64,000 nt of DNA from Macrostomum lignano. Its lineage: Eukaryota. The number at the start of each line of letters is the position of its first letter. Position 1 is the stretch's first letter. A model generated the notes under the pieces. That model was not told the DNA's origin, did no database searches, and saw nothing but the letters and a program-made list of their open reading frames with translations. Shown here piece by piece: positions 1 through 64,000 of the stretch. The translations under genes were made by a program, and so were the position numbers. The stretch is from positions 76,441-140,440 of the forward strand of contig NIVC01000866.1 of the NCBI GenBank assembly GCA_002269645.1, written 5' to 3'.

Positions 1-1070
1 GAATAGATTGACAGACAGAAAGGCAGACAGACAGACAGACACACAGACAGACAGAAAGATAGACAGACTGAGTGAGACTGACACAAGGACACATAGACAG
101 GCAGACAGACCGAAGGACACAGAGGCAGACAGACACAAGGACACATGAACAGGCAGACACAAGGACACAGAGGCAGACAGACCGAAAGAAACACAGGCAG
201 ACAGACACAAGGACACACAGGCAGACAGACACAAGGACACACAGGCAGACAGACACAAGGACACAGAGGCAGACAGACACAAGGACACACAGGCAGACAA
301 ACACAAGGACACACAGGCAGACAGACACAAGGACACAGAGGCAGACAAAACAAGGACACACAGGCAGACAGACACAAGGACCACAGGCAGACAGACACAA
401 GGACACACAGGCAGACAGACACAAGGACACACAGGCAGACAGACACAAAGACACAGAGGCAGACAGACACAAGGACACAGAGGCAGACAGACACAAAGAC
501 ACAGAGGCAGACAGACACAAGGACACAGAGGCAGACAGACACAAGGACCCACAGGCAGACAGACACAAGGACACAGAGGCCGACAGACACAAGGACACAC
601 AGGCAGACAGACACAAGGACACAGAGGCAGACAGACACAAGGACACACAGGCAGACAGACACAAGGACACACAGGCAGACAGACACAAGGACACACAGGC
701 AGACAGACACAAGGACACAGAGGCAGACAGACACAAGGACACAGAGGCGGACAGACACAAGGACACAGAGGCAGAAAGACACAAGGACACACAGGCAGAC
801 AGACACAAGGACACAGAGGCAGACAGACACAAGGACACAGAGGCAGACAGACACAAGGACACACAGGCAGACAGACACAAGGACACACAGGCAGACAGAC
901 ACAAGGACACAGAGGCAGACAGACAAGGACACACAGGCAGACAGACACAAGGACACAGAGGCAGACAGACACAAGGACACAGAGGCGGACAGACACAAGG
1001 ACACAGAGGCGGACAGACACAAGGACACAGAGGCAGACTGACACAAGGACACAGAGGCAGACAGACACTG
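1..1070. repeat. 24-bp minisatellite (GCAGACAGACACAAGGACACAGAG)n preceded by (GACA)n; intronic to the WD40 gene
   Basis: Unit read directly from the sequence. It explains ORFs 72..1208 and 145..1041. Confidence 0.95.
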
Positions 1071-1124
1071 TGTCAGGACACACAGGCGGACAGACACCCG
1101 AGCCTCCCCATCCCTAAACCGCAG

Positions 1125-9288: not shown

Positions 9289-9839
9289 CAAGGACTTATT
9301 AAGTTGAAGGACAGGAGGCAGGCCCAGTGCTGATCTTTTTTATATGTTTGCCTTTTTGTTATAGCTCCATTGATATTCCCGACACTTTTCGTTCAGAAAA
9401 ATAGGATTCTATTCATAATTTTTATTCCACTTACATTTGTAGATGTCCTGTGTCTAAGAACCATTAAAGTGGCACGGTTTTAAAATCTATTTTGTCATTC
9501 TTTGCCGAGTTTGTAACAATATTTCTAACAGAGATGATCAAATCCACTTCTAAAACCAAAAAGTCGAGCTGTGCCACGCATTTTTATGATGTTTAGATAG
9601 TAAACATAGAATCCTAATTTTCTGAACAAGAAGCTTCATGAATATCAATAGAGCTAAAAGAAAGGCACAACATATCAAAAGATGAACATTAGGTCTGCCT
9701 CCTATCAAAAGCAATAACTATTTTTGCGCCGAAAAAATGAAAACTTCCCATCTCCGTTGTGTATTTTTCGGAAAAACCGGCCTCCTAAAATTTTCCAAGA
9801 AACAATTTTTCCCGTCCTTCTAGTTGAGTGTCGTCCTTG
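9289..9839. mobile_element. Foldback MITE with CAAGGAC termini (P-superfamily-like), left arm partly deleted
   Basis: Ends CAAGGAC...GTCCTTG. Flanks CTTGCACT / CTTGCACC (7/8 TSD). The right arm (~9600-9839) closely matches 60535-60774. Confidence 0.8.
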
Positions 9840-9928
9840 CTTGCACCGCGTATGGCAAAGATAAATGAAAATTAATAAATCTCAAACCAATCAGTTCGTC
9901 CTTCTACTCAGCCAGTCTCTCTCCTTCA

Positions 9929-23661
<13,733 letters not shown>

Positions 23662-28071: not shown

Positions 28072-31000
28072 ATGCCAGAGCAGCAGCAGCAGATTAGAGA
28101 TCCCGGTGACCGCTTTACCGGTTTTCCACCTGGTCGACCGGCTGATGGCAGCCGGTGCTGGATGTTCGACCTGTTCAAGGCGGGGAGGTCGAGCCGGCGT
28201 TTTCCAATTGCTCCGGATGGTGAGTCAGACTGCATGGGTTTGACACTTGCTAATTGCTGGCAGAGTTTAGCAGTTAGGCTACTCATTATAAGCCCCTGCT
28301 GACGCTTTCAAGCTACTTACCATGACCCTAGGCTAAAACATATTCTAGCTGGTCACTATGACCTTACTCCACACACACTTAGGTACTCACTATGACCCAC
28401 TCCTGACACACTTATCTACTCACTATGACCTGCTCCTGACACACTTATTTAATCACTATGACATACTCCTGACACACTTATCTACTCACTATGACCTACT
28501 CCTGACACACATTCTTGCTACTCACTATGACCTACTACTGACACACATTCTTGCTACTCACTATGACCTACTACTGACACACATTCTTGCTACTCACTAT
28601 GACCTACTCCTGACACACATTCTTGCTACTCACTATGACCTACTCCTGACACACATTCTTGCTGCTCACTATGACCTACTCCTGAAAAACTTATCTACTC
28701 ACCATGACCTATTCCTGACACACTTATCTACTCAATATGACCTACTCCTGACACATTTATCTACTCACTATGATCCACTTCTGACACATTATTGCTACCC
28801 ACTATGACCTACTCCTGACAGATATTCTGGCTACTCACTATGACCTACTCCTGACACATTCTTGATACTCACTATGACCTACTCCTGACACACTTATCTA
28901 CTCACAATGAGCTATTCCTGACACACTTATCTACTCAATATGACCTACTCTTGACACACTTATCTACTCACTATGAACTACTCCTGACACACATTCTTGC
29001 TACAAACTATGACCTACTCCTGACAGATATTCTGGCTACTCACTATGACCTACTCCTGGCAAATAATTCTTGCTAATCACTATGACCTACTCCTGACAGA
29101 AATTCTGGCTACTCGCAATGACCTACTCCTGACAAATTGCAGTTTTTAGTCGTCAATAGCTCAATATACAATATTTTTGATTTACAACCCGCACGCGCCA
29201 GGCCAAATTCCGAACTCTGTCATACGTCAACTATTTGAGCCTTCGGAGCCGAAAGCTGCTATCAGCAGTGTGCCTGCTAAGCTAAAAAAGGTAAGTAAAC
29301 ACCTGAGCAGACAAGCCATAACTTATCATCTGATAAATATTGCGTTCGAGCTTTCAGGAAATTGCTGTAGAAAGTCAAAAAAAAATGTAAGTCGACTTTG
29401 ATCAAGAAAGAGCTTCTCTTTTAGGGTGTTGGGCTCCAGTGGAAAAACTGCTATTGTAAACTCTGGTCTTTTTAGTTCGGTTTGCTATTGACTTCTTGAG
29501 TCTCATTTCCTAGAATTTCTTAGGACATATTTAGATTTTCCGTTTGGTGATTTTGGATGGCACAAGTCTAGATGATTTTCACGCCAGACTGGATGATTCT
29601 GGTTGGTGCCAGAATAGATGATTTTGACTCCAGACTAGATGATTTTGGTTGGTGCCAGACTAAATGATTTTGACTCCAGACTAGATGATTTTGACTCCAG
29701 ACTGGATGATTTTGACTCCAGACTAGATGATTTTGACTCCAGACTAGATGATTTTGGCACCAGACTAGATGATTTTGGCACCAGACTAGATGATTTTGGC
29801 ACCAGACTAGATGATTTTGACTCCAGACTAGATGATTTTGGCTCCAGACTAGATGATTTTGGCTCCAGACTAGATGATTTTGACTCCAGACTAGATGATT
29901 TTGGCACCAGACTAGATGATTTTGACTCCAGACTAGATGATTTTGACTCCAGACTAGATGATTTTGGCTCCAGACTAGATGATTTTGACTCCAGACTAGA
30001 TGATTTTGGCACCTGACTTGATGATTTTGGTTGGTGCCAGACTAAATGATTTTGGCTCCAGACTAGATGATTTTGGCTCCAGACTAGATGATTTTGGCAC
30101 CAGAATTGATGATTTTGGCACCTGACTTGATGATTTTGGTTGGTGCCAGACTAAATGATTTTGGCTCCAGATTAGATGATTTTGGCGCCGGATCAGTTGA
30201 TTTTGGCGCCAGACTAGATAATTTCGGTAGCAGAATAGATGATTTTGGCTCCAGAAATGATAATTTTGTTGGCGCCAGACTCGTGGATTTACTGCCGGTG
30301 CTAAGCTAGGTGATCAGACCCCGGTGCTAAGCTAGGTGATCAGACCCCGGTGCTAAGCTAAGTGATCAGACCCCGGTGCTAAGCTAGGTGATCAGACCCG
30401 GCCTCATGTCGAATTTTTATCCCTCAAAACAGCCGCTGCGCCTTCGGCGCCGATTCGCGCGAGCAGAGCCGATCCCGGAGCCCGCAGCTGAGGGTGCCGC
30501 TGAGATGTCAGTGGACGAGGCGTCCTACCTCAACGTTACAACCCGCTGGGACACCTGGGCAGATGATGACAGCGGCAGCCAACAGCAGTTTGATGATGTA
30601 CCGGAGTCGAGCAGCGACACTTCGGAAGTCAGCGAAGTCAAACAGCTCGCCGAGCTACCGGAAGAGCCCAGGAGGACGGTGGAGACGCCTTCCACATCCG
30701 CCTCGGCAAGCCTTCAGCCTGCGACGAGCTTGGAGCCTCCAGCTCAGCAGCCGGCAACTTCAAAACGGAAGCGAGCAATCAATGCGGGGGCGGCCGGGGG
30801 TGTCGAGCGGCTTCCACCGCTGCCAAGCCAGCAGCAGCTCCGGCTGCTCAGGCAGAAGCGGCAGCAGCAGGTGCAGCCGCCGAAGCCACCACTGCAGCAG
30901 GAAGACCGACCGCCTCCTCCTCAACTACCGCCGTCTCCGCCGCCTCCGCTGGCAACGCAGCCTCCACCGCCGACTCCTCCGCAGCCGCCTCCGCCTCCTC

Positions 31001-33890
31001 CGCCGCCTCCAGCTCAACCGTCCAGCTCAGCCGCGCCGCCTGCACAGAAGCCGGAGGCAAAACGGACGCAAAAGCAGAATCGACAGGCAGTTGGAAGGCG
31101 AGCGCCGCCGGTGCTGAAGCCACCGCCGCCGCCACCACCGCCGCCGCCGCCACCGCCGCCTCCTCATCCGCCTGCATCACCGCCTCTTCAACGACGGGCA
31201 TCTGCTTCTTCATCGTCAGCGGAGAAGCCGCTGCCACCATCGCTGCCGTCGCCGCCGTCACGCCCGCAGCCTCCGCCGCTTCCAAAGATTCCGCAAATTC
31301 CTGTCGTGATCGTTACGGCTGACGATGTCGCCGACTTTTACGATGGCAGCGAGGATGATACAAGCCAGCCAGAGCTGGACTCGCTCCAGGGGGTGCAAGA
31401 TTTGCCCAGCTTTGCTAACCCCCTCCCCGGGGAGCCGGATATTCAATCGAATCAAGAACCGGAAGTGAAGTCGGAACCAAATTCTGAAGTGCAATCGCAA
31501 AATGAAACGAAAGGAGAAATAGAAGTGGAGCTGGAAGTGAAACAGGAAGTGGAACCGGAGGTTAAGCCGGAAGTGGAACCGGAGGTTGAGCCGGAAGTGG
31601 AACTGGAAACTGAAGACACGGAATCTGAACCGGAAGAGGAGCCGGAACTACAGGAGCTAGAAACGGTTGAGGAAATGTCTTACGATAGCAGAAAGTCTGC
31701 TACAGAGTCAGACTACCAGACCGATCTGCTCTCGGCCATCGTGTCCGAGCCGTGGTTCCGCCAGCCGGAGGTGCCGCTGCTGACGGAGCCGGTGGCCAGA
31801 GCTCTCACTGAGATGATGTCGGAGTCTACGAACAGTCTCGAGTCGCATGGGGAGATGTGTCGAAGACTGCTGGACATTAAACAGTGAGGACTTTGTTTAA
31901 CAATTGCAAATTTTAATGCCAAACATTCATTAAGTTTTCTCTTCAAATCAGACAGCTCAACCTCCGCGAAGACTTTGAGCTGCAACTTGTATCGGAGCTG
32001 ATCTCCCAGCTAGAGAGACTCATCGACGAGCTGATGAAGTTAGCCGATGAGGCCCGGAAGCTGGGACCTTCAAGAGGTGAAAGAAGCAATAACAACAGCA
32101 GCAGAAGTAGCACTGTTCGGTGCAAAGGTGACAACCTGCTGGATTTGCTCCGGCGGATGGGGCACGATTTGACGGACGAACTCAGAAAGGTAATGGGAAA
32201 GTTGAAAAGCAGCTTGGCTATCCGACCCTTTGATGTGCCGCTGCACCATCATCCCCTCCGATCCTTTGATGTGCCGCTGCACCATCATCCCCTCCGATCC
32301 TTTGATGTGCCGCTGCACCATCATTCCCTCCGACCCTTTGATTTACTGCACTGCTCTGCATCATTCCCTCTACTTTTCCTCTTTGCCTCCTCATCGTACT
32401 ATCAGTAAGCAGTTCCAGTTTCATCAGCTCAGTACCTTTGCAGCGTTGGACCGGCGCTCTTCTCTCGGCAACCCTCGCCGAGGACGCCAGCCGTCAGCAT
32501 CGCAGACCTCGACGGAGACGCCATCGCGGCCACTCCGACTCAGGCATGGGCACGGAGAGCGTCGAATCTACAGAGACTTCAGAGTCGGGCGACAGCCGAA
32601 ATCGTGAGCAGCGTAGGCTGAATGCCCTGAGTGAGGAGGAACGCCAGACTGCTGCCACCAGCTTGAGCCAGCGCGACCTGGATGCCGATGGCAAACCCAA
32701 CAGTGCTGACGAGGATGAGGAGCCCGAAGCTCTACAAGGCCTGCTGCTGCGGGACGAAGCATCGATCGACGAGACAGAGGAAGCTGACGCTGCGTCCACA
32801 GTTCGATTCATGCTGCCCCCAGAGACCTCGATTGGTTCGGAATCTGGAAACAGCGAAGAGGTAATCTGCAGAAACTTGTGCGTTAGAAAATATCTACTGA
32901 TATATAGGATTGTGCAATCCGAAAGTGACGCCATTCGATCATTGGCTGCTTGCTTCTAAAAATAGAAACTGACGCTATTCAGTGATTATCTGCGTGTTTC
33001 TAAAAATAGAAACTGACGCCATTCAGTGATTATATGCGTGTTTCTAAAAATAGAAACTGACGCCAATTGCTTACGTAATTTGCAGAAGCACTGGCTCCCT
33101 CCCGTGCCAACTCCGCCACCGATGCCACGACCAAATCAAAGGAGGCCGGTATTTTTCGAGGCCAAAGAGGAGACGGTGTTCGAGTAAGACATTTCTCACT
33201 GAACCTCTCTCTGGCAACAGAATAACTTGAAACTTATTTTCAGTTTTATGCGTATGCGGTTAAACTTTCAGTCAGATGGGCGACTTTCGACTGAAGCGAC
33301 TTGTGCAGAACTTGCCGCCGATTGTGCGCCTGGACCTCGAGTCCATCGCTGAGCGCTCGCGCCAGTCGGCCAGCAGCTATCGGTGCCCTCGGCTAGTTGA
33401 TCAATCGTCCCGTTGGTCCAATCGTTCCTCCGGATAGTGAGCTGACTTTCCAGTTTGGTTCGAATCGCACTACTCAGCTCAGTAGTCAGCAGAGAACTCA
33501 TATTATTTTTTCAGCTACAGCGATCGAAGTCAACAGCCCGACGCTACCAGCTACTCGGCCACCTGGCAACCAGCTCAAGTCTTCGAGTCGGAGCCGGACG
33601 ACTCAACGACGTCTGCGCCGTTCCGCCTGCCAGCCCTGGATCGGCAGGTGAGACAGACAGAACGGTCTCAGGCTCGGGTGCGATTTTCTTCTTGCAACCA
33701 CGATGAAGCCAGCTCGAGCGGTGATGCAGACAGCAGCATCCCGATGCGGCCATCAGAGCTGTGGGATGCGCACTGCAGGATGGAGAGCCTGGCCAAGCAC
33801 GGCATGGACGCCGCCGGTATTCGGATTGGACGCCACCTGGCCAGGGACCGCCTGCTGTTCTCGCTACTGCTGCCATCGCTGAGGGAATAA
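28072..33890 (+). CDS. Pro-rich/Glu-rich, largely disordered protein of unknown function, ~993 aa, 8 exons
   Basis: Exons 28072-28219, 29202-29290, 30433-31883, 31952-32189, 32444-32860, 33086-33183, 33272-33436 and 33515-33890. All are AG/GT bounded and the phases chain (1,0,2,0,0,2,2); total 2982 nt = 994 codons. Contains polyproline tracts, EVEP repeats and a helical/coiled-coil-like segment (LNLREDFELQLVSELISQLERLIDELMKLADEARK). AATAAA at 34300-34305. Confidence 0.8.
28355..29130. repeat. 36-bp minisatellite (CACTATGACCTACTCCTGACACACATTCTTGCTACT)n
   Basis: Read directly; in intron 1 of the orphan gene. Confidence 0.95.
29560..30290. repeat. 21-bp minisatellite (GATGATTTTGACTCCAGACTA)n
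   Basis: Read directly; in intron 2 of the orphan gene. Confidence 0.95.
30295..30400. repeat. 26-bp tandem repeat (CCGGTGCTAAGCTAGGTGATCAGACC) x ~4
   Basis: Read directly; just upstream of the 30433 acceptor. Confidence 0.9.
32222..32345. repeat. 36-bp tandem repeat x ~3 (TCCGATCCTTTGATGTGCCGCTGCACCATCATCCCC)
   Basis: Read directly; in intron 32190-32443. Confidence 0.85.
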
Positions 33891-36522: not shown

Positions 36523-43664
<7,142 letters not shown>

Positions 43665-43747: not shown

Positions 43748-46700
43748 GAGAGTGACTGCTTTAGAGTGACTGATTGAGAGTGACTGATTGAGAGTGACTG
43801 ATTGAGAGTGACTGACTGAGAGTGACTGATTGAGAGTGACTGATTGAGAGTGACTGATTGAGAGTGACTGACTGAGAGTGACTGATTGAGAGTGACTGAT
43901 TGAGAGTGACTGATTGAGAGTGACTGATTCAGAGTTACTGATTCAGAGTGACTGATTCAGAGTTACTGATTCAGAGTGACTGATTCAGAGTGACTGACTG
44001 AGAGTGACTGATTGAGAGTGATTGATTGAGAGTGGGCTTATTTAGAGTGACTGATTGAGAGTGACTGATTAAGAGTGACTGATTGAGAGTGACTGATTGA
44101 GAGTGACTGATTGAGAGTGACTGATTGAGAGTGACTGATTGAGAGTGACTGATTGAGAGTGACTGATTGAGAGTGACTGATTGAGAGTGACTGATTGAGA
44201 GTGACTGGTTGAGAGTGACTGATTGAGAGTAACTGATTGAGAGTGACTGATTGAGAGTGACTGATTGAGAGTGACTGATTGAGGGTGACTGATTGAGAGT
44301 GACTGATTGAGAGTGACTGATTGAGAGTGACTGATTGAGAGTGACTGGTTGAGAGTGACTGATTGAGAGTGACTGATTGAGAGTGACTGATTGAGGGTGA
44401 CTGATTGAGAGTGACTGATTGAGAGTGACTGATTGAGAGTGACTGATTGAGAGTGACTGATTGAGAGTGACTGATTGAGAGTGACTGATTGAGAGTGACT
44501 GATTGAGAGTGACTGATTGAGAGTGACTGATTGAGAGTGACTGATTGAGAGTGACTGATTGAGAGTGACTGATTGAGAGTGACTGATTGAGAGTGACTGG
44601 TTGAGAGTGACTGATTGAGAGTAACTGGTTGAGAGTGACTGATTGAGAGTGACTGATTGAGAGTGACTGATTGAGAGTGACTGATTGAGAGTGACTGATT
44701 GAGAGTGACTGATTGAGAGTGACTGGTTGAGAGTGACTGATTGAGAGTGACTGGTTGAGAGTGACTGATTGAGAGTAACTGATTGAGAGTGACTGATTGA
44801 GAGTGACTGATTGAGAGTGACTGATTGAGAGTGACTGATTGAGAGTGACTGATTGAGAGTGACTGATTGAGAGTGACTGGTTGAGAGTGACTGATTGAGA
44901 GTGACTGATTGAGAGTGACTGATTGAGGGTGACTGATTGAGAGTGACTGATTGAGAGTGACTGATTGAGAGTGACTGATTGAGAGTGACTGATTGAGAGT
45001 GACTGATTGAGAGTGACTGATTGAGAGTGACTGATTGAGAGTGACTGATTGAGAGTGACTGATTGAGAGTGACTGATTGAGAGTGACTGATTGAGAGTGA
45101 CTGATTGAGAGTGACTGATTGAGAGTGACTGATTGAGAGTGACTGGTTGAGAGTGACTGATTGAGAGTAACTGGTTGAGAGTGACTGATTGAGAGTGACT
45201 GATTGAGAGTGACTGATTGAGAGTGACTGATTGAGAGTGACTGATTGAGAGTGACTGATTGAGAGTGACTGATTGAGAGTGACTGATTGAGAGTGACTGA
45301 TTGAGCAGTGACTGATTGAGAGTGACTGATTGAGAGTGACTGGTTGAGAGTGACTGATTGAGAGTGACTGGTTGAGAGTGACTGATTGAGAGTAACTGAT
45401 TGAGAGTGACTGATTGAGAGTGACTGATTGAGAGTGACTGATTGAGAGTGACTGATTGAGAGTGACTGATTGAGAGTGACTGGTTGAGAGTGACTGATTG
45501 AGAGTGACTGATTGAGAGTGACTGATTGAGGGTGACTGATTGAGAGTGACTGATTGAGAGTGACTGATTGAGAGTGACTGATTGAGAGTGACTGATTGAG
45601 AGTGACTGATTGAGAGTAACTGATTGAGAGTGACTGATTGAGAGTGACTGATTGAGAGTGACTGATTGAGAGTGACTGATTGAGAGTGACTGATTGAGAG
45701 TGACTGATTGAGAGTGACTGATTGAGAGTGACTGATTGAGAGTGACTGGTTGAGAGTGACTGATTGAGAGTGACTGATTGAGAGTGACTGATTGAGGGTG
45801 ACTGATTGAGAGTGACTGATTGAGAGTGACTGATTGAGAGTGACTGATTGAGAGTGACTGATTGAGAGTGACTGATTGAGAGTGACTGATTGAGAGTGAC
45901 TGATTGAGAGTGACTGATTGAGAGTGACTGATTGAGAGTGACTGATTGAGAGTGACTGATTGAGAGTGACTGATTGAGAGTGACTGATTGAGAGTGACTG
46001 ATTGAGAGTGACTGGTTGAGAGTGACTGATTGAGAGTAACTGGTTGAGAGTGACTGATTGAGAGTGACTGATTGAGAGTGACTGATTGAGAGTGACTGAT
46101 TGAGAGTGACTGATTGAGAGTGACTGATTGAGAGTGACTGATTGAGAGTGACTGATTGAGAGTGACTGATTGAGCAGTGACTGATTGAGAGTGACTGATT
46201 GAGAGTGACTGGTTGAGAGTGACTGATTGAGAGTGACTGGTTGAGAGTGACTGATTGAGAGTAACTGATTGAGAGTGACTGATTGAGAGTGACTGATTGA
46301 GAGTGACTGATTGAGAGTGACTGATTGAGAGTGACTGATTGAGAGTGACTGATTGAGAGTGACTGATTGAGAGTGACTGATTGAGAGTGACTGATTGAGG
46401 TGACTGATTGAGAGTGACTGATTGAGAGTGACTGATTGAGAGTGACTGATTGAGAGTGACTGATTGAGAGTGACTGATTGAGAGTGACTGATTGAGAGTG
46501 ACTGATTGAGAGTGACTGATTGAGAGTGACTGATTGAGAGTGACTGATTGAGAGTGACTGATTGAGAGTGACTGATTGAGAGTGACTGATTGAGAGTGAC
46601 TGATTGAGAGTGACTGGTTGAGAGTGACTGATTGAGAGTAACTGATTGAGAGTGACTGATTGAGAGTGACTGATTGAGAGTGACTGATTGAGAGTGACTG

Positions 46701-46790
46701 ATTGAGAGTGACTGATTGAGAGTGACTGATTGAGAGTGACTGATTGAGAGTGACTGATTGAGAGTGACTGATTGAGCAGTGACTGATTGA
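43748..46790. repeat. 3-kb 14-bp satellite (GAGAGTGACTGATT)n
   Basis: Read directly; explains the 952-aa and 913-aa ORFs. Confidence 0.98.
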
Positions 46791-47449
46791 GCAGTCACTA
46801 ACAGTAACAAAATGAAATCCGTAGATCAATAGATTATTATTTATAGCTCAAAAGACGCGTAATTCCTAACGCAGTTAATAAATTTGGCTTCCTGTCAGCC
46901 TTCCGTATCTGCAAGCAGCGCACACAGACTGTATCGTCACTGCTTAGCACACCCACGCAAGACCATCTCCTGTTTCAGTTCTGCTTTGTTCACCGAGCGC
47001 GGCTTCCTTTCGGGAAGATCTTTCACTGCGGAAGGAGCCAAGCACACACACACACACACACACACATCTTCCATCACACACATCTTCCATCACACACACA
47101 TCTTCACTCATTAATCTCCTGTGTCTCTCTGTCTCCTAGACTCCGTCAGTTAGTGTTAAATTCATTCAAAGTAGCAACCTCATGGTGCCTCGCAGTTCAT
47201 TATCTCACATAGTCGACCTCTAGTGCGCCCTCCTGATCGCCAACTCCTTTTTTGGGAGAGCGAATGGGGGCTTGAGATTCTCGCGTACCGGATGGTTGCT
47301 ATGGATATAGGGACAGGTGGCCCTGCCTGTTCTACCTCTGCCTGCGAATCGTTGTCTATCCCACCAAATCTCTCCCTTCTCTCTCCTTCTCCCTGTCTCC
47401 CTCCCTTCTCGACCTGCATTTCCTAATCTTCCATCTTTCAGTCATTTTC

Positions 47450-52179: not shown

Positions 52180-52860
52180 AAACTATCTCACCCCATTCCG
52201 AATCTATCTCGACCTCTGTGGGCATTTCTGTGGGCACCTCAACCTATTCGGAATCTATCTCACCTCATCTTGAATCTACCTCACCTCATTCCGAATGTAT
52301 CTCATCCCATTTCGAATCTATCTCATTCCGTTCCAGATCTATCTCACCCCATTCCCAATCTATCTCACCCCATTCCCAATCTATCTCACCCCATTTCGAA
52401 TCTATCTCACCCCATTCCGAATCTATCTCACCCCATTTCGAATCTATCTCGACCCATTTCGAATCTATCTCACCCCATTCTGAATCTATCTCACCCCATT
52501 CCAAATCTACATGTATCTCACCTCATTTCGAATCTATCTCGACCCATTTCGAATCTATCTCACCCCATTCCGAATCTATCTCACCCCATTTCGAATCTAT
52601 CTCGACTTATTCCGAATCTACCTCGACTTATTTCGAATCTATCTCACCCCATTCTGAATCTATCTCACCCTATATTCAGTCTAGCTCACCCCATTCCGAA
52701 TCTATCTCACCTCAGTCCGAATCTATCTCACCCCATTCCGAATCTATCTCACCCCATTCCGAATCTATCTCACCCCATTTCGAATCTATCTCGACTTATT
52801 TCAAATCTATCTCACTCCATTCTGAATCTATCTCACCCTATTTCGAATCTATCTCACTCC
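52180..52860. repeat. 21-bp minisatellite (CCGAATCTATCTCACCCCATT)n
   Basis: Read directly; explains the NLSHPIP ORF. Confidence 0.95.
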
Positions 52861-53371
52861 TTTCCTTGCTATCTCCTCTCATTCGTTTTTGTATCTTATC
52901 TTTATGAAATCCTTCCATACTTGTCAATATTTATTTACAGAAGTTTTGAAACATACCGTACCTTGCTTCCAGCAATATATAATTATTGTCTCCTGCTGTC
53001 ATAAAATTTCATCATCACGCAAACACGTGAGGCCCTATCTGACGCAAAGAACACTGTGCACCCCAGAATTAAATACTTTTGAGCCTCAATACTACAATAG
53101 AAAGGAAAAGAAACTGCTCAATTTGCATTAACTACGAGTACTAGACCAAAGTACGCAGTGTTAATCGCACCCCAATCGTACCCCATACGTATTAATTGTA
53201 TCGTTGTTTGTCAGTGCCCTTGGCACTTTCGTCTCGCTGAGTTTAACACTCACTTGCCCAGCGAGGAATAAAAAGCCGGTTCAATCCGCTTCTTAATCAC
53301 ACTCGGGGGCATTTCGCATGCAGGCGCCTCCCGTGTCGTAGGTCTGCTCAGAAAGCGTGCTCAGAACAGGC

Positions 53372-53378
53372 TATAAAT
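53372..53378 (+). promoter_or_regulatory. TATA box of cationic peptide gene 1
   Basis: TATAAAT 95 nt upstream of the ATG at 53473; Inr-like TCAG about 25 nt downstream. Confidence 0.7.
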
Positions 53379-53472
53379 GGGCCCCAGCTTCACTTCCATT
53401 ATCAGCTGACTGGGAGGTCTGAATCGCCGCTGTTCTCGTTGAATTTCCGCAGCATCAGCAGCATCAATCAGC

Positions 53473-53718
53473 ATGAAGTGGCAGCTGGCCGCTCTTCTGC
53501 TCGCCTGCGTCGCCGTGGCCGTCATGGCGTCGCCGTCGGCCGAGGCCGAGGACTCGGACCTGGCCGAGCTCGCCCAGCTGCAGGAGGCCATGGAGAGCGA
53601 TGAGGTCGAGCACCTGCAGGCTAAAGGCCGCTACAGGCGCTTCAAGCGCAAGCTGAAGCGCGCCTACAAGCGCTATCTGAAGAGGCACGGATACCGGAGG
53701 CACGTGATTTATGGCTGA
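53473..53718 (+). CDS. Secreted cationic peptide precursor 1 (81 aa; putative antimicrobial peptide)
   Basis: Intronless ORF MKWQLAALLLACVAVAVMA|SPSAEAEDSDLAELAQLQEAMESDEVEHLQAK|GRYRRFKRKLKRAYKRYLKRHGYRRHVIYG*. Hydrophobic signal peptide, propiece with 10 D/E, and a 30-aa tail with 9 R + 5 K and no acidic residue. GC3-rich codons; TATA box present. Confidence 0.9.
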   Translation: MKWQLAALLLACVAVAVMASPSAEAEDSDLAELAQLQEAMESDEVEHLQAKGRYRRFKRKLKRAYKRYLKRHGYRRHVIYG

Positions 53719-54534
53719 TTGTGGCCGCCACTGGACTGTCCGCAACGGAACTGATTGTACTGAGTAATACTATATGCTCTCCACAGTATGAAGTACTTTG
53801 TAGAATTATCGATACAAGTATTGCATTTGCAAAATTATCAATACCGAAAAGAGCATGTTTCACCATCGCATGAGCTTGTCGTGTCAATGCAGCTGATTTA
53901 TACAAAAAGAATGGTAATACACGAGCGTACACTTACTTTGCTATTCCTACTCTTATTTTAAGTACAGGTAACTCGTACGGGCTACTCTCAGCAGTTCTTG
54001 TTTTTATTTATTGAATTTGAAGATGGCTTGCACACCGAAAAGGCGAATTCCGTGTCCTAGATTGGATGATCTGGCATGCTAAATCAGAGATTGTGCAAAG
54101 ACTCGACTGTTCTCTTTGATCAAGAGTTCGAATTGATTTTTAGTATGTTTGTATTCAATCGTTCAGAGTCCCTCTGAAATATGATAAACACTTTTACTAT
54201 AGCTTTTGCAGCCCATTAGGGCCTACGTGCGATAAATTTAATTTAATGTAAGACACGGTTGGTAAAGTAATGGAGCTTTTGTCTATGGTAGCAAGGCTGA
54301 CACAGTGGCATTTAATTTGGTCAGCTATTGGTTTGCTGTTAGCATCACATCAAGCTCTGCAATGTTGCTTGAATAAAATTAATATCGTAGGCGTAGGAAC
54401 GTTTCAAAAAGTGGGGGGCCAGGTTCAGTGGCGGATTTAGGGGGGGGGGGGAGGGCGCACGCCCCCCATCGAGTTGGATTTTTTATATGGGAAATGCACA
54501 TTATCATGTACAGATTATTTTCAGAATCGGTGTT

Positions 54535-55830
54535 GTCAGCACTCATTTTAGCGCCGCAGCCACTCATTTTAGCGCCACAAGCATTCATTTTAGCGCCGCA
54601 GGCACTCATTTTAGCGCCACAAGCATTCATTTTAGCGCCACAAGCATTCATTTTAGCGCCGCAGGCACTCATTTTAGCGCCACAGACACTCATTTTAGCG
54701 CCACAAGCATTCATTTTAGCACCGCAGGCACTCATTTTAGCGCTGCAGGCACTCAGTTTAGCACCGCAGCCACTCATTTTAGCGCGGCAGGCACTCATTT
54801 TAGCGCCGCAGCCACTCATTTTAGCGCTGCAGGCACTCAGTTTAGCACCGCAGCCACTCATTTTTGCGCCGCAGGCACTCATTTTAGCGCTGCTGGCAGT
54901 CATTAGCGCCGCAGGCACTCATTTTAGCGCTGCTGGCAGTCATTAGCGCCGCAGGCACTCATTTTAGCGCCGCAGGCACTCATTTTAGCGCGGCAGGCAC
55001 TCAGTTTAGCGCCGCAGCCACTCATTTTAGCGCGGCAGGCACTCATTTTAGCGCCGCAGGCACTCATTTTAGCGCCGCAGGCACTCATTTTAGCGCTGCT
55101 GGCAGTCATTAGCGCCGCAGGCACTCATTTTAGCGCTGCTGGCAGTCATTAGCGCCGCAGGCACTCATTTTAGCGCCGCAGGCACTCATTTTAGCGCTGC
55201 AGGCACTCAGTTTAGCGCCGCAGCCACTCATTTTAGCGCGGCAGGCACTCATTTTAGCGCCGCAGGCACTCATTTTAGCGCTGCTGGCAGTCATTTTAGC
55301 GCTGCAGGCACTCAGTTTAGCGCCGCAGCCACTCATTTTAGCGCGGCAGGCACTCATTTTAGCGCCGCAGGCACTCATTTTAGCGCCGCAGGCACTCATT
55401 TTAGCGCTGCAGGCACTCAGTTTAGCGCCGCAGCCACTCATTTTAGCGCGGCAGGCACTCATTTTAGCGCCGCAGGCACTCATTTTAGCGCCGCAGGCAC
55501 TCATTTTAGCGCTGCAGGCACTCAGTTTAGCGCCGCAGCCACTCATTTTAGCGCGGCAGGCACTCATTTTAGCGCCGCAGGCACTCATTTTAGCGCCGCA
55601 GGCACTCATTTTAGCGCTGCAGGCACTCAGTTTAGCGCCGCAGCCACTCATTTTAGCGCGGCAGGCACTCATTTTAGCGCCGCAGGCACTCATTTTAGCG
55701 CTGCTGGCAGTCATTAGCGCTGCAGGCAGTCATTTTAGCGCCGCAGCCACTCATTTTAGCGCGGCAGTCACTCAGTTTAGCGCTGCTGGCAGTCATTAGC
55801 GCCTCAGGCAGTCATTAGCGCTGCAGGCGA
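54535..55830. repeat. 21-bp minisatellite (CACTCATTTTAGCGCCGCAGG)n
   Basis: Read directly; explains the CGAKMSA/ILAPQAL ORFs. Confidence 0.95.
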
Positions 55831-57296
55831 TATGTGAAAGAGTTCTGCAGTCTCTCAAGAATAAAAGCTCTACTGTTAGGCTCAAGAACTGTTTATTTGA
55901 GTCTGAACCCCCACCCCATTGTGAGCCTGGCACTGGAAAGACCGACTCTTCATTGCCGCTGTCTCAAGGCTAGGTCGCATTGAGCATGCAGACTACCTGA
56001 GGGGCTGAGTATTCTCTTAACCAGCTCACCCAAATTTGGCTTGACTTCTTGGGGCTCTGTTTTGTAGGTAAGCGAAAGCTCCCAGATTTCGGATTTATAG
56101 ATTCGACGAGGTGGAGCTACGAGCTTGATTGTTTGAAACGAGAGAAAGCTGTTAATGAAGTTCTCTCGTTTCAAACCATATGCCTGACGATGCACCTAAC
56201 GTGTGCAAAACGCGTCGTAACAACCTACATGTTGATTTTTGGCTTTCTCTTTAAATATCGAATTCTTCAACGATCATGCATAACTTTTTTGATGAAAAAT
56301 TCCTATTATGACTAGTGGGGTCAAATATTCGAAAAAGATGTTTTTAACGCTTTCACGCTTAACGCTCCGTTTGAATTTAATTGTTCAGTTCAATCATTTA
56401 GGTCTCACCTTGGCCAATGTACAGTGTAGAATGTACATTCACAATAGCTAAGGCGTTTTATGACTCGCAATTTGTGGTGTTGATTGAGTTTTATCGTTTA
56501 CCAGTCTGATAGACGATCGATGAAATAGAGGGGGTTATAAAGCTGCTGGCCTGAAATGCGATGTGTTTGCGGACGAAACAAGCCTTTTTTCACAATCCCC
56601 ATCTTGCTCTGCTCTGCCCATTTGCCACTGCTCTGATTTTGTTTGTGTTATTTTAGAACACAGAGGGTGGCGCAGTTGCAGATGGGGGCAGTTGCTAAAG
56701 GGTTCAATTACTTCAGACTTACTTGGCAAATTTGGAAAATGGTGGGCTTAGTGCGCTAGTCACAATATACTAAATAATTTCCTAAATTAATAAATAGATT
56801 TAAACAATGCGTCAACACTATTTTATAGATCTGATAAATATTTACCAATATTTTTCAAAGGCGACCCGAGTCTGCAATAGAGGAAGCATATATACTCAAC
56901 AACATTAAAAAGTCGCCACCTTTGAAAGTGCGCAGTAAATTCCAGCTCAGTATTGATTTCTGACTCAGTTTTGAGTGACGCAACTTAAGCACGATCGGAA
57001 ACAGAAAAGTGAGAAAGATGCTGAAGTCTGTTACCCTGCTGCTAAATATTTATTTTAACTAAAAGTTAAAAAAGTTAAAAAACAATGCTTAATAATTACG
57101 AGCTAGCTTGCAAACTGCGAACGATGAAATTCCAAGTGTATTTTCTGCCTGGCAGATTCTCAAAGTTCACGATGTTCAACAATCACTTAAGCTGATATTA
57201 TATAGTAAATTTTTTTGTTGATTAAGTGTACATTATCAGTAAAGAAAGATTAGCCATATTGTCCAAGGCGATAATTCAGAAGACGGTCCGCTTCGT

Positions 57297-57596
57297 TTAG
57301 CCATAGAAGTGGTAGCGCCTGCGGAAGAAGCGCCTGCGGATGCGGAAGTAGCGCCTGCGGAAGTTGCGCCTGCGGAAGTAGCGCCTGCGGAAGTAGCGAC
57401 GCCTGCCGAACCGAATCCTAAACTTCTCTTCCGGATCCGCGTCCTCGTCGGATTCGGCCAGATCGGGCTCGGCCATGTCGGCCAGGGCGGAGGCCACCTT
57501 TTCAAAGTCTTCGTCGTCTTCTTTGTGCTCAGCCGGGCTGGCGTAGACCGCCAGCGCCACGCACAGGAGGAGACCGAGAGCGAACTGCCACTTCAT
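57297..57596 (-). CDS. Secreted Arg-rich peptide precursor 2 (99 aa; putative antimicrobial peptide)
   Basis: Intronless ORF from ATG 57596: MKWQFALGLLLCVALAVYA|SPAEHKEDDEDFEKVASALADMAEPDLAESDEDADPEEK|FRIRFGRRRYFRRRYFRRRNFRRRYFRIRRRFFRRRYHFYG*. Propiece has 17 D/E; the tail has 21 Arg in 41 aa. The first 21 residues are 15/21 identical to precursor 1. Confidence 0.92.
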   Translation of the reverse strand: MKWQFALGLLLCVALAVYASPAEHKEDDEDFEKVASALADMAEPDLAESDEDADPEEKFRIRFGRRRYFRRRYFRRRNFRRRYFRIRRRFFRRRYHFYG

Positions 57597-57682
57597 GGCT
57601 GCTGCTGAATTCAGAGAGATTCGCTTTGCAAAGTTGATCCCGTCTTGGGTCTTGGGGGCCGTTTTGAGCTCGAGGTGGTCGA

Positions 57683-57689
57683 ATTTATA
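57683..57689 (-). promoter_or_regulatory. TATA box of cationic peptide gene 2
   Basis: TATAAAT on the minus strand, 87 nt upstream of the ATG; same CTATAAAT context as gene 1. Confidence 0.7.
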
Positions 57690-60080
57690 GACCCGCAAAC
57701 TGGGGCGGGGGCACGTTTTTGCTTACCTGCAAAACAGAAGCCCCAAAAAACGTGCTCTCAAGACTCGATAGGGGGTTGAAATTTGAATGCTTTTGCCTCA
57801 TGGTCCAAATTGCATTCAAAGAAAGAACGAAAGATGCATGCAGTAGCTGCCATTTTAATTTCAGCAACCACATATCTGATATTAATTCTCTCACGGCCCC
57901 TTCTCAACTCAATGCTACCTAGCCTTGAGGCAGCAGTAATTAAAAGCGGCTCTTCAGTGTCAGACTCACAATAGGTGGCCTCAAGAACAGCATAAGCAAG
58001 TCTTGAGCAGTTGAGCTTGAGAGTTGAAGCTGTTATTGTCTGGAAAACTACCGAACTCTACCTACGAGTCTTGTGAGTTCGCTCACACACTTGCAGACTT
58101 GCGTCGCATGGAAGCTTTTTCGGTCCCAGCATATTTTGGCCCATAAATTTTCTGTCAGGTTGACAGAGATCCCGGGACTTTAAAGCTGATTTGTGTCTAT
58201 CTTCCAAGGGAATTTGTTTATCGTCAATTCAGCGAACCCAAAGTTTTGCATGCTGGTATCGGCACGGGCTGTTCTGCCAGGCGTCCTGCACACCGCAGCG
58301 CTGTTGCTGGGGCTATTGATGTCAGAGATGCATTTGCGACAAAGCACTGGCATTATTGGCATATTTAGCATGAGCAGTACCCTCAGGAGTTTGCAGCCTA
58401 AACTTATGCAGCTTTGAAAAGTCAGAGATTCCTTCATGCTGCCACACCTTCACAGACTAAATATCTTGACTACAAAAGACTGTATCATCATCAGATTCGT
58501 ATTACATTCAGTGGTGTAGCAGTTTGAACAACCCAATGAATTCGAATGACATTTCGAAACACTTTTTATGCACACTCGGCAGTTCAAAATTACCTTCAAT
58601 GGTTCACCAAAAATTTAGTGATGGTTCACCAGCAGTTTAGCAATGGCTCACCCACAATTTGGCTACGGTTCACCAACGGTTTAGAAACGGTTTATCAGAA
58701 GTTTAGCAATGGCTCACCAGCTATGGTTTACCAGCACTGTTTCTCACAATCCCTGAGCAGATGGCCACAAATCTCCGAGCAGTTCTACAGTAATCCCATG
58801 GTAGTTTTTCGCCGACCATGCTGAGACCCAAAAAGGTCTAAAAAGGGATATTTCTCAATAAATCGAAACAATTTTAAATGTTTTAAAGATCCTTGCATCA
58901 TTATCTATGTATTTATTGTAAATGTCAGATTAGACTGCTCCCCAGATTTCAAATATTAAGAACTCTGTGAATCCGAGCTATGTTTTCCGTTTGGTTATCT
59001 CATCGTTTCGTCTGGGAACCTGTATCGAACTCAAAGGCAGTTTTATTACGTAACATCTACTCGCTGCAAAGAGATAGATGCAAAATAGGGCTCCGAACAC
59101 TCTCCAATGCTTCATCGCCGAATGATACGATACCACTGAGCTCAAACTCAAAGTACTAAACCCCTCCGACCACTTCCGTGAGGCGATTTCTTATTTAGGT
59201 AAACAATGGGAGGCATTGATGGAGTGGAATCAAATCATTTACATTTCACTTCCAGCAAAAAACAAACAAGATCAAAGTATCATCAAAGTAGTCTGCATCA
59301 GTGAGTTATCCGTGGATTCGCTCCGTGTAAGCGGAGTGAAATAAAGTCAAGTAGTCAGAAGTCTGAACTTTACGAGATTGCGACACGAAAGCCAAAAAAC
59401 AACGTTGCAGGCCGAAAAGCCAGCTTATACTGAAACTTTATCGATATTTTATTATCGATCAGCTGACTCACCCAAACCCCACCCCGCGCTTGCAAAGTAC
59501 ATTCAGCGAGAGTGAGAGACATCAAAACAACCCAACCCAGCACCTGCCACCGGCGCTCACGCATAAAGTAACCACAGCAGTGATGCACGGTCCTCTGGGG
59601 GTTGTTTCACAGTCGTGGGTGCTCTTCACTATTACTTAGGCGTAACTTCTACGAGTTTATTTTGATGCCAACCGAGACTGAGCTTTCTGGGTGGAGATGC
59701 AGTATGAAGTAGGATTGGCCATAGACAAACCTTAATGTGGAAGAAGGTATACATGTATTGAAGTTGCTCTGGCATGTGCCAAGTTCACTTTTCTGATCTT
59801 TCTGTGTTTACTGCCATACCGTCTTTACCGTGAATTGGCTGAAAATATATCGAATATCCATTCAATTCGACTTGAAGCAACTCAAGCAACTCCTTATGTG
59901 CTCTAAAGCTGGGAGCGACATCGGGGCTTTTACTACAGACTAATTTTCTTTCGTGAAATATTTCTAGAGAATGAAAGTTTATTGCTATTTAACTAAAAAC
60001 TTGAGCCTTACCTTACCTTTATAAGTAATCTAACCATATTTGCGACCGACGAATATGCAATAAGTAGTACGAGATACAAG

Positions 60081-60774
60081 CAAGGACGACTTAAGTAGAA
60101 GGACGGGAAACCTCGTTTCTTAGAAAATTTTTTAAGGCAGGTTTTCCCGAAAAAAATACACTACGGAGATAGGAATTTTTCATTTTTTCAGCACAAAAAT
60201 TGCTATTGCTTTTGATAGGAGGCAGATCCAGTGTTCATTTTTTGATATATTGTGCCTTTCTTATTGCTCTATCGATATTCATAAGGCTTTTCGTTCAGAA
60301 AATTTGGATTCTATGTTAATTTTTTATTCTACGTATATTTTCACGCGTCTTGAGCCTGAAATACATTAAATGCCACGGCTCGGCTTTTTGGTTTTATGAG
60401 TCTATTTTATAATTCTTAGCTGACTGTGTAACAAATATTTGTAACAGATGATAAAATAGATTCATAAAACCAAATATTAAAGCTGTGTCATACATTTTTG
60501 TGATTTTTAGATACAGGAAATATACGTAGAATAAAAATTTAACATAGAAATCTAATTTTCTGAACGAAAAGCTTTATAAATATCAATAGAGCTATAAGAA
60601 AGGCACAGCATATCAAAAGATGAACACTGGATCTGCCTCCTATCAAAAGCAATAGCAACTTTTGTGCTGAAAAAATGAAAACTCCTATCTCCGTAGTGTA
60701 TTTTTCAGGAAGACCTGCCTTCTAAAATTTTCTAAGAAACAAGCTTTCCCGTCCTTCTACTTAAGTCGGCCTTG
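60081..60774. mobile_element. 694-bp foldback MITE with CAAGG termini (P-superfamily-like)
   Basis: Ends CAAGGACGACTTAAGTAGAAGGACGGGAAA / TTTCCCGTCCTTCTACTTAAGTCGGCCTTG. Inverted arms are clear for ~260 bp and weaker toward the centre. Perfect 8-bp TSD GATACAAG at 60073-60080 and 60775-60782. Confidence 0.92.
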
Positions 60775-63851: not shown

Positions 63852-64000
63852 AATCAATCTATGGAACAATCATGGAATCTATCGAATCAATCTATGGAAC
63901 AATCATGGAATCTATCGAATCAATCTATGGAACAATCATGGAATCTATTGAATCAATCTATAGAACAATCATGGAATCTATTGAATCAATCTATAGAACA
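63852..64000. repeat. 33-bp minisatellite (AATCAATCTATGGAACAATCATGGAATCTATCG)n running off the window end
   Basis: Unit starts at 63852 and 63885. Confidence 0.92.

Follow-up and report, generated by a model that had tools for sequence, protein, structure and literature searches.

Two short genes that face each other in the genome of the flatworm Macrostomum lignano raise the question of what they encode. They lie in a stretch of 64,000 nucleotides (nt) of contig NIVC01000866.1 (assembly GCA_002269645.1, positions 76,441 to 140,440 of the forward strand), which was analyzed as a whole and is called the window here; coordinates refer to the window unless another sequence is named. An earlier note on this DNA had read the two genes, here called gene A and gene B, as an undescribed family of host-defense peptides that had duplicated and was diversifying quickly. 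Does such a family exist, how do its members vary, and what might their products do? We found that A and B are members of a Macrostomum family of secretory prepropeptides that has at least 12 distinct precursors, and we considered host defense together with four other accounts of what these genes are for.

Two members of a Macrostomum prepropeptide family

Gene A lies on the plus strand (53473-53718; ATG at 53473, stop at 53716-53718) and encodes 81 amino acids, and gene B lies on the minus strand (57596-57297; ATG at 57596, stop at 57299-57297) and encodes 99 amino acids. On the contig, gene A lies at about 129913-130158 and gene B at about 133737-134036. The genes are convergent, with their 3' ends about 3.6 kilobases (kb) apart, and they are the only two copies of the family in the window, which contains no third. 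The convergent, intronless layout that the earlier note had described holds: the strands are opposite, both open reading frames (ORFs) are uninterrupted, and the annotated paralogues are single-exon. The coding sequences have a G+C content of 62-65% (83-88% at third codon positions, GC3), whereas the flanks have 35-47%. Each precursor can be divided into a signal peptide, an acidic propiece, and a cationic tail, and most of the tail of gene B is made of a repeat with a unit of 15 base pairs (bp), identified with Tandem Repeats Finder (TRF):

53473..53529, plus strand: gene A signal peptide, residues 1-19, MKWQLAALLLACVAVAVMA; predicted cleavage between VMA and SP, AlphaFold helix at residues 3-18, published SignalP 4.1 result positive
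53530..53625, plus strand: gene A acidic propiece, residues 20-51, assigned from charge and alignment; the last residue is the family-invariant junction Lys
53626..53718, plus strand: gene A cationic tail, GRYRRFKRKLKRAYKRYLKRHGYRRHVIYG, and stop codon; the terminal Gly is the presumed amide donor
57540..57596, minus strand: gene B signal peptide, residues 1-19, MKWQFALGLLLCVALAVYA; published SignalP 4.1 result positive
57423..57539, minus strand: gene B acidic propiece, residues 20-58, assigned from charge and alignment; the last residue is the invariant junction Lys
57300..57422, minus strand: gene B cationic tail, residues 59-99, FRIRFG(RRRYF)n...RRRYHFYG, followed by the stop codon at 57299-57297
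57312..57398, minus strand: in-frame 15-bp tandem repeat, 5.4 copies (TRF), unit CGCAGGCGCTACTTC encoding RRRYF

Written out in the order signal, propiece, and tail, the precursor of gene A is MKWQLAALLLACVAVAVMA, SPSAEAEDSDLAELAQLQEAMESDEVEHLQAK, and GRYRRFKRKLKRAYKRYLKRHGYRRHVIYG, and that of gene B is MKWQFALGLLLCVALAVYA, SPAEHKEDDEDFEKVASALADMAEPDLAESDEDADPEEK, and FRIRFGRRRYFRRRYFRRRNFRRRYFRIRRRFFRRRYHFYG. As had been noticed before, both begin with ATGAAGTGGCAG, and our recount of the first 21 residues (MKWQLAALLLACVAVAVMASP in A and MKWQFALGLLLCVALAVYASP in B) again gave 15 identities. Both leaders have a Lys in the n-region, a hydrophobic core of 13-15 residues, and a V-x-A cleavage motif. 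The charges bear out the acidic spacer and the basic, aromatic tail ending in Tyr-Gly-stop that had been reported for both genes: the spacer has a net charge of -10 in A (residues 20-50) and -15 in B (residues 20-57), and the basic tail has a charge of +15 over 31 residues in A and +22 over 42 residues in B. Without the terminal Gly, the tails carry +14 over 29 residues and +21 over 40 residues, respectively, and aromatic residues make up 21% of the tail in A and 35% in B.

The two proteins match each other in a pairwise BLASTP comparison with E = 6e-15 and 42% identity, and a profile built from these two sequences retrieved four real relatives from 1.84 billion representative proteins (E = 2.7e-16 to 8e-5). 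Because of the BLASTP score and the retrieval of relatives at E = 2.7e-16, we regard the likeness of A and B as beyond chance. With a six-sequence profile, eleven clusters were found, and the best E-values reached 1e-27; the profile searches covered 1.84 billion representatives and 5.8 billion clusters. A single-sequence word-based search with the gene A protein gave no match, and the relatives came from the exhaustive profile search only. The named matches are all "hypothetical proteins" of M. lignano, and the family was found only in Macrostomum, plus P0005, which comes from a genomic Logan contig (run SRR31628392). The paralogue count is at least 12 distinct precursors, most of them with a tail that ends in Gly, and this agrees with the duplicated, fast-diversifying family that the earlier note had proposed, in which the signal peptide is conserved, the propiece is acidic, and the cationic tails cannot be aligned.

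A and B align with at least nine M. lignano proteins and have in common with them the leader MK(W/Y)Qx(A)LGLLLC. Alignment columns M1, W3, Q4, L9, L10, and C12 are invariant and the signal peptide is near-invariant; that of gene B is identical at the protein level to those of paralogues P0002 and P0010. An acidic propiece, often with ALEAL, is present in every member. The Lys at the junction with the tail (K58 in the alignment) is invariant and is Lys-Lys in one sub-family, and 8 of the 12 distinct tails end in Gly. Between sub-groups the tails are unrelated in sequence, and they fall into helix-like Lys/Arg tails, two-Cys tails, Pro/Arg repeats, (VR)n-Leu-Gly octa- to decapeptides, and Arg/Tyr/His repeats. 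The tails seen were WRRRRRFRWRKAIRVAGKVAKAVL, WRIKSACKIFRRLLHLARKCYAKKG, an LPRVR repeat, WFSRWFRITYRRRGGERRYLRSYFRLG, an Arg/Tyr/His repeat, and the tails of A and B, together with the short tails FVRVRVRLG, FIRARVRVRLG, and FVRVRARIRLG.

Neither A, B, nor nine relatives reached the Pfam threshold, the models of frog signal and propeptide regions included, and Rfam and PDB sequence searches gave no match for the family. A strong match to a known non-immune family, which the earlier note had named as evidence that would tell against its proposal, was not found in the Pfam and PDB searches. Three apparent leads were set aside. The match to P0006, a metagenome protein that carries RRRYW repeats, is driven by composition, and P0006 is not a member of the family. 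P0011 (85 amino acids) is a chimeric model that spans two identical tandem copies of a 62-amino-acid precursor (at 10001 and 12747 of locus L009, L009 10001-12935); its chimeric splicing produces an apparent internal duplication and also the spurious "Lock_Gag1-like" Pfam match, which at 27.1 bits barely passes the cut-off of 27. The UniRef name of P0012, "SERPIN domain-containing", finds no support in its 73 residues.

Both proteins had entered the published record before this analysis. In the S5 File of Irvine et al. (2023; PLoS Pathog 19:e1011508, PMC10414684), A is BOX15_Mlig026130g3 in fAMP-LP group 71, B is BOX15_Mlig014430g1 in fAMP-LP group 129, and two further sub-groups of the family are groups 116 and 142. 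The word "undescribed" in the earlier note is therefore correct in one respect and not in another: both proteins have gene models and are listed in S5, but that study split the Macrostomum family over four groups and did not see it as one. All four groups were SignalP 4.1 positive, so that for the exact proteins A and B the secretion check that the earlier note had suggested has a published positive result (PMC10414684). Antimicrobial peptide (AMP) predictors were positive in 10 of 11 cases (90.9%) for A and B and in 8 to 11 of 11 (73-100%) for the other two groups; the C-terminal 22 residues of gene A were scored AMP-like by 90.9% of 11 predictors (PMC10414684). ProP placed two convertase sites in the gene A protein (PMC10414684, S5 File), and the amidated product predicted from them is KLKRAYKRYLKRHGYRRHVIY-NH2. 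All four groups were flagged "Same genome" in the table and left unsynthesized (PMC10414684); they were discarded because they were found in a single genome assembly, and the authors considered species-specific peptides unlikely to be prioritized. The species-restriction filter of that study removed exactly the Macrostomum family.

The idea that A and B lack annotation and might not be transcribed is likewise ruled out, as both are BOX15 gene models (PMC10414684, S5 File). BOX15 models come from a genome-guided RNA-seq assembly (PMC5730564), which indicates that both genes are transcribed under ordinary culture conditions. Eight family gene ids were absent from the supplements of five M. lignano expression papers, a search that did not include the ids of A and B (Mlig026130 and Mlig014430), and neither peptide sequences nor gene ids gave a match when paper texts were searched for them literally. 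New here are the union of the four groups, the promoter module, the four-copy cluster with its pseudogene, the statistics that focus divergence on the tails, and the mechanism of repeat slippage.

A common promoter and divergent tails

We aligned the regions upstream of the family genes and found that they have three elements in common: a (T/C)ATAAAT box, an AAA(A/C)ACGTGCC box 10-25 nt upstream of it, and a CACGT(G)-type box farther upstream. At the two genes of the window these elements take the following form:

53350..53361, plus strand: gene A degenerate family promoter box, AGAAAGCGTGCT, with three mismatches to the consensus in the promoter alignment
53371..53378, plus strand: gene A TATA box, CTATAAAT, 3' end 95 nt before the ATG
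57683..57690, minus strand: gene B TATA box, CTATAAAT, 3' end 87 nt before the ATG
57710..57720, minus strand: gene B family promoter box, AAAAACGTGCC, exact, 20 nt upstream of the TATA box
57745..57757, plus strand: gene B second ACGTG-containing box, AAAAAACGTGCTC, in the opposite orientation to the first and aligned with the CACGT(G) box of the paralogues

The distances of CTATAAAT from the two start codons are those that the earlier note had given. The pattern AAA[AC]ACGTG[ACG]C has 12 matches on both strands of 338 kb of fetched Macrostomum DNA, and all 12 of these exact matches sit 94-145 nt before a family ATG, on the correct strand, in six independent paralogue lineages. Gene B has the full set of elements, and gene A has part of it (the TATA box and the three-mismatch box); a regular-expression scan found no exact ACGTG upstream of gene A. 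The ACGTG core is the type of site that is read by bHLH-PAS and bHLH-ZIP factors. No consistent poly(A) signal was found downstream of the family genes, and the 500 nt downstream of gene A contain no canonical AATAAA.

The rate of change differs along the precursor. Among B, P0010, and P0002, nonsynonymous divergence (dN) in the signal peptide is 0 and synonymous divergence (dS) is 0.15, and in the propiece dS is 0.5-0.66 and dN/dS is 0.46-0.76; in more distant pairs the dN/dS of the propiece is about 0.5 to 1.1. Across the family the tails are not alignable. At the DNA level, the 5' half of gene B and the 176 nt before its ATG are 77% identical to the P0002 locus, and this likeness stops at the tail. 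B and its sister copy BOX15_Mlig017551g1 are identical at all 58 prepro residues and differ at 8 of 41 residues of the tail (Fisher p = 5.6e-4). The two sister copies of gene A carry one change in the tail (H77R) and one in the leader (A7T). Divergence is concentrated in the tails; leader and promoter stay constant.

In B, P0010, and P0005 the tail is built of in-frame 15-bp repeats (encoding RRRYF, RRRYY, and LPRVR, respectively), and because of this, repeat slippage is demonstrated as one source of tail change. The tail of gene A contains no DNA repeat. The repeat-built tails provide a clean case for tandem-repeat slippage as a potential driver of effector diversification.

The local cluster and the rest of the window

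Together with a truncated pseudogene and another intact gene, A and B form a cluster of four family copies confined to about 15 kb. The pseudogene and the other intact gene lie beyond the window, in a sequence from the same contig (L010, contig NIVC01000866.1) that overlaps the window end with 100% identity over 5739 bp. The 5'-truncated pseudogene (L010 13740-13922, approximately 658-840 nt past the window end) is on the strand of gene B. A deletion has removed its TATA box, its 5' untranslated region, and its signal peptide, so that the upstream promoter region now runs directly into mid-propiece sequence; what is left is some of that promoter region, the 3' part of the propiece, and a short tail that ends in LQEKFRIRFRFRKHRYFRRRSQF and a stop codon. 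The third intact paralogue (L010 10001-10318, approximately 4.3-4.6 kb past the window end) is also on the strand of gene B, and its genomic ORF of 105 amino acids is BOX15_Mlig008283g1. Mlig025063g1 is a 96-amino-acid variant of this paralogue that lacks one 27-bp repeat unit, and the presence of this unit in one copy and its absence from the other indicate that the copy number of tail repeats varies.

Elsewhere, family loci occur as tandem pairs (L009), divergent pairs (L005 and L006), and single genes, and each of these loci is found on two or three near-identical contigs, as expected of a polyploid. Clustering together with a pseudogene is the pattern expected of birth-and-death evolution.

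Repeats make up more than half of the M. lignano genome; simple and tandem repeats account for 15%, and recent polyploidy has left large duplicated blocks (PMC5730564). The satellite density of the window agrees with this repeat content. A 21-bp minisatellite of 62 copies (unit GCACTCATTTTAGCGCCGCAG) lies between genes A and B (54539-55828), and another 21-bp minisatellite, of 29 copies, lies just upstream of gene A (52251-52864). Micro- and minisatellite arrays fill the window (72-1208, 18356-22066, 41411-43516, 43971-46829, and many more) and mimic very long ORFs in several frames. At the window end, a 33-bp satellite with 98% matches (63852-64000) runs on into L010 14087-14662 (about 0.5 kb). 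A foldback element of about 700 bp (60081-60774) has nested arms of 164 nt (93% complementary), 79 nt (89%), and 44 nt (80%), and a related copy lies at about 9310-9852.

The window also contains exons of a PDZ-RhoGEF gene on the minus strand (9929-12046 and 15185-15383), with an ORF that is rich in poly-Gln and has 68% G+C. These exons match BOX15_Mlig000883g3, which lies on another contig, with an identity of 72-85% in DNA and, varying from segment to segment, 40-73% in protein, so that they belong to a diverged paralogue of that gene; the ORF itself matched no Pfam family at threshold. The best match of a PDZ-RhoGEF-like ORF of the window is in M. lignano, and this match, together with the identity of L010 to the window end, rules out the crustacean origin that the density of simple and tandem repeats had suggested. 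A fragment with a helix-turn-helix of the P-element-transposase-like type (13284-13895, plus strand) scored 21.8 bits, under the Pfam cut-off of 23. The remaining features are a WD40-repeat exon (2693-3277, plus strand) and a Pro/Glu-rich ORF of 499 amino acids (30388-31887, plus strand) that has no Pfam match and is probably a large exon of an uncharacterized gene.

Possible roles of the tails and comparison with known systems

We lean toward the reading that A and B, both transcribed, belong to a family of secretory prepropeptides that is restricted to Macrostomum, has grown by tandem and segmental duplication, and has tails that serve as host-defense effectors. We favor it because the set of leader, propiece, invariant cleavage residue, terminal Gly, hypervariable tail, cluster with pseudogene, promoter, and genus restriction matches families of the AMP type. 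We infer the host-defense role from this layout, and with it the cleavage sites, the amidation, neutralization by the propiece, and antimicrobial action.

According to this proposal, a TATA promoter with the family-specific AAAAACGTGCC box would drive an intronless mRNA, and the 19-residue signal peptide would bring the product into the secretory pathway and be removed after Ala19. The acidic propiece would neutralize and chaperone the polycationic tail in transit and storage, an endoprotease would cleave behind the invariant Lys of the junction, or behind Lys-Lys in one sub-family, and the C-terminal Gly would be converted to an amide. The peptide released from A (about 29 residues, +14, rich in Lys, Arg, and Tyr) and that released from B (about 40 residues, +21, with Arg/Phe/Tyr repeats) could each then act as an extracellular host-defense effector, with polyanionic microbial surfaces, membranes, or nucleic acids as putative targets. 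The tails would diversify fast, partly by slippage of 15-bp in-frame repeats, and the leader and promoter would be kept constant.

AlphaFold models made from shallow alignments reach a mean pLDDT (predicted local distance difference test) of about 69 in each of the two proteins. They show a helical leader, one or two propiece helices, and a helical tail (residues 54-71 in A, pLDDT about 81; residues 55-98 in B, pLDDT 76-85).

Several observations weigh against a host-defense role. The hydrophobic moments of the tails at 100 and 180 degrees were not above those of shuffled sequences (p = 0.12 and 0.72 for A; p = 0.50 and 0.53 for B); the only clear cases are the short (VR)n members, which are beta-amphipathic (p about 0.04). 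The earlier note had called the tail of A helix-like, and this description is upheld by the AlphaFold helix, at moderate confidence, but not by the helical moment (p about 0.12), which leaves a classical amphipathic lytic helix in A unsupported. Rich in Arg and aromatic residues, the A and B tails are closer to polycations of the protamine-like or cell-penetrating type than to lytic helices of the amphipathic kind. A positive score from an AMP predictor largely reflects cationic charge. Of 20 predicted peptides that were synthesized, only 8 proved active (PMC10414684). Furin-type convertases could cut inside the tails at many RR, KR, and RRR sites, and such sites, of which ProP predicts two in A, make the mature products uncertain. 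The promoter box of gene A is degenerate and its leader diverges more than any other, and the short members (FVRVRVRL-Gly) look like amidated signaling peptides.

A bolder form of the host-defense reading would make this the first bona fide gene-encoded host-defense peptide family of a free-living flatworm: a genus-restricted, co-regulated battery under an ACGTG-type module, possibly read by bHLH-PAS or bHLH-ZIP factors, whose tails are remade by in-frame minisatellite slippage and shape the microbiota. We offer it tentatively, as a proposal more open to doubt than the simpler one. If it is true, a genome with 15% tandem repeat contains a built-in generator of peptide diversity.

The best placed of the alternatives, which we consider unlikely, is that the genes encode neuropeptide- or hormone-like precursors from which cleavage at Lys or Lys-Lys and amidation at Gly yield receptor ligands; cationic neuropeptides of Hydra can also be antibacterial. 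Most members have a Lys-Lys junction and a terminal Gly, some tails have just 8-10 residues (FVRVRVRLG and FIRARVRVRLG), and in gene B the sequence FRIRFG is followed by RRR and is a potential RFamide. Compared with neuropeptide precursors, the family appears to have the basic cleavage sites and the C-terminal Gly but to lack a conserved mature peptide. Its conservation is in fact the reverse of what such a precursor would have, as the leader and spacer are kept and the presumed ligand cannot be aligned. In addition, charges of +14 and +21 and changes in length driven by repeats are ill suited to a specific receptor ligand, and each precursor gives a single product rather than multiple flanked copies.

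It is also possible, although quite unlikely, that the products are structural or material secretions, in which Arg/Tyr/Phe polycations and the co-released propiece form coacervates or condense granules (mucus, rhabdite, or adhesive) through charge and cation-pi interactions. The duo-gland adhesive system of M. lignano is well studied. In the tails of B and P0010, which carry RRRYF and RRRYY repeats, aromatic residues make up 28-35% and Arg/Lys 41-52%, and the charge of the acidic half is nearly stoichiometric with that of the basic half. Other tails, however, are short or poor in aromatic residues (FVRVRVRL has only its initial Phe, and the helix-like WRRRRRFRWRKAIRVAGKVAKAVL has 12%), and amidation signals would be unexpected in bulk material proteins. 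Eight family ids are also absent from the part searched of the table of in-situ-validated reproductive and tail-region genes in the supplements of PMC7336406, a search that left out the ids of A and B.

A decidedly improbable account is that the genes encode reproductive (seminal-fluid) peptides, or toxins against prey, predators, or mates, that have diversified through sexual or antagonistic selection. Fast tail divergence behind a conserved leader is also typical of toxins and seminal proteins, and this account gains from the fast evolution of reproduction-related genes in Macrostomum, as reported in PMC7336406 and PMC8662610. Against it, weakly, the same eight family ids are not among the in-situ-validated testis, ovary, prostate, and tail genes in the parts searched of the supplements of PMC7336406, where the ids of A and B were not part of the search.

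Finally, it is scarcely credible that A and B are chance ORFs or dead copies that make no product: the promoter box of gene A is degenerate, a truncated pseudogene adjoins, and AATAAA is missing from the 500 nt downstream of A, but the ORFs are intact, GC3 is 83-88% against AT-rich flanks, the leaders are under purifying selection, near-identical sister copies are in frame, and RNA-seq-derived gene models exist for both.

The host-defense reading can be approached directly, because M. lignano is tractable, the promoter module spans about 150 bp, and peptides of 8-46 residues can be synthesized. RNA interference is established in this species. Transgenesis and good genome resources are available as well (PMC5730564). 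If the peptides are inactive, the family becomes one more lineage-restricted family of secreted peptides.

How do these precursors compare with known systems? Amphibian skin-peptide precursors of the preprodermaseptin type have a hyperconserved signal, an acidic propiece with a basic cleavage site, a hypervariable cationic peptide, and frequent Gly-derived amides. The Macrostomum family recalls the frog family in that the dS of its signal region is below that of its propiece. It differs in that A, B, and nine relatives match no Pfam model, those of the frog signal and propeptide included, in that the junction is Lys or Lys-Lys rather than Lys-Arg, and in that A and B have non-amphipathic tails with a far higher Arg content. 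No homology to the prepro domains of amphibian preprodermaseptins, cathelicidins, or other curated AMPs was found in Pfam, PDB, or profile searches. The signature of a conserved leader and a hypervariable tail is also that of venom-peptide families.

Among Arg-rich AMPs, cell-penetrating peptides, and protamine-like proteins, the likeness to the Macrostomum tails lies in high Arg content, low amphipathicity, and repeats, the LPRVR unit of P0005 being a Pro/Arg repeat. This likeness is one of composition, with no homology detected, and protamines have neither signal peptide nor propiece. The active fAMP-LPs of cestodes and other parasites (e.g., fAMP-LP-5 and fAMP-LP-17) are unrelated in sequence to the Macrostomum groups (PMC10414684). 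Taken together, the layout is of a known kind in a family that has no detectable relatives outside Macrostomum.

Arminins and periculins of Hydra are genus-restricted AMP families, and antibacterial activity and endodermal expression have been shown for the arminins (PMC10945409). Arminins and the Macrostomum family have no sequence homology, and no cnidarian protein was among the matches from the 1.84 billion representatives and 5.8 billion clusters, so that the likeness is one of layout alone. Unlike the arminins, the Macrostomum genes are intronless, have repeat-built tails and a defined common promoter box, and are known here from sequence. In the organization of the precursor the two families agree, as each has a signal peptide and is negatively charged in its N-terminal half and strongly cationic in its C-terminal half (PMC10945409). 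Like the Macrostomum family, the arminins form many tandem-duplicated, clustered paralogues and are confined to a single genus (PMC10945409).

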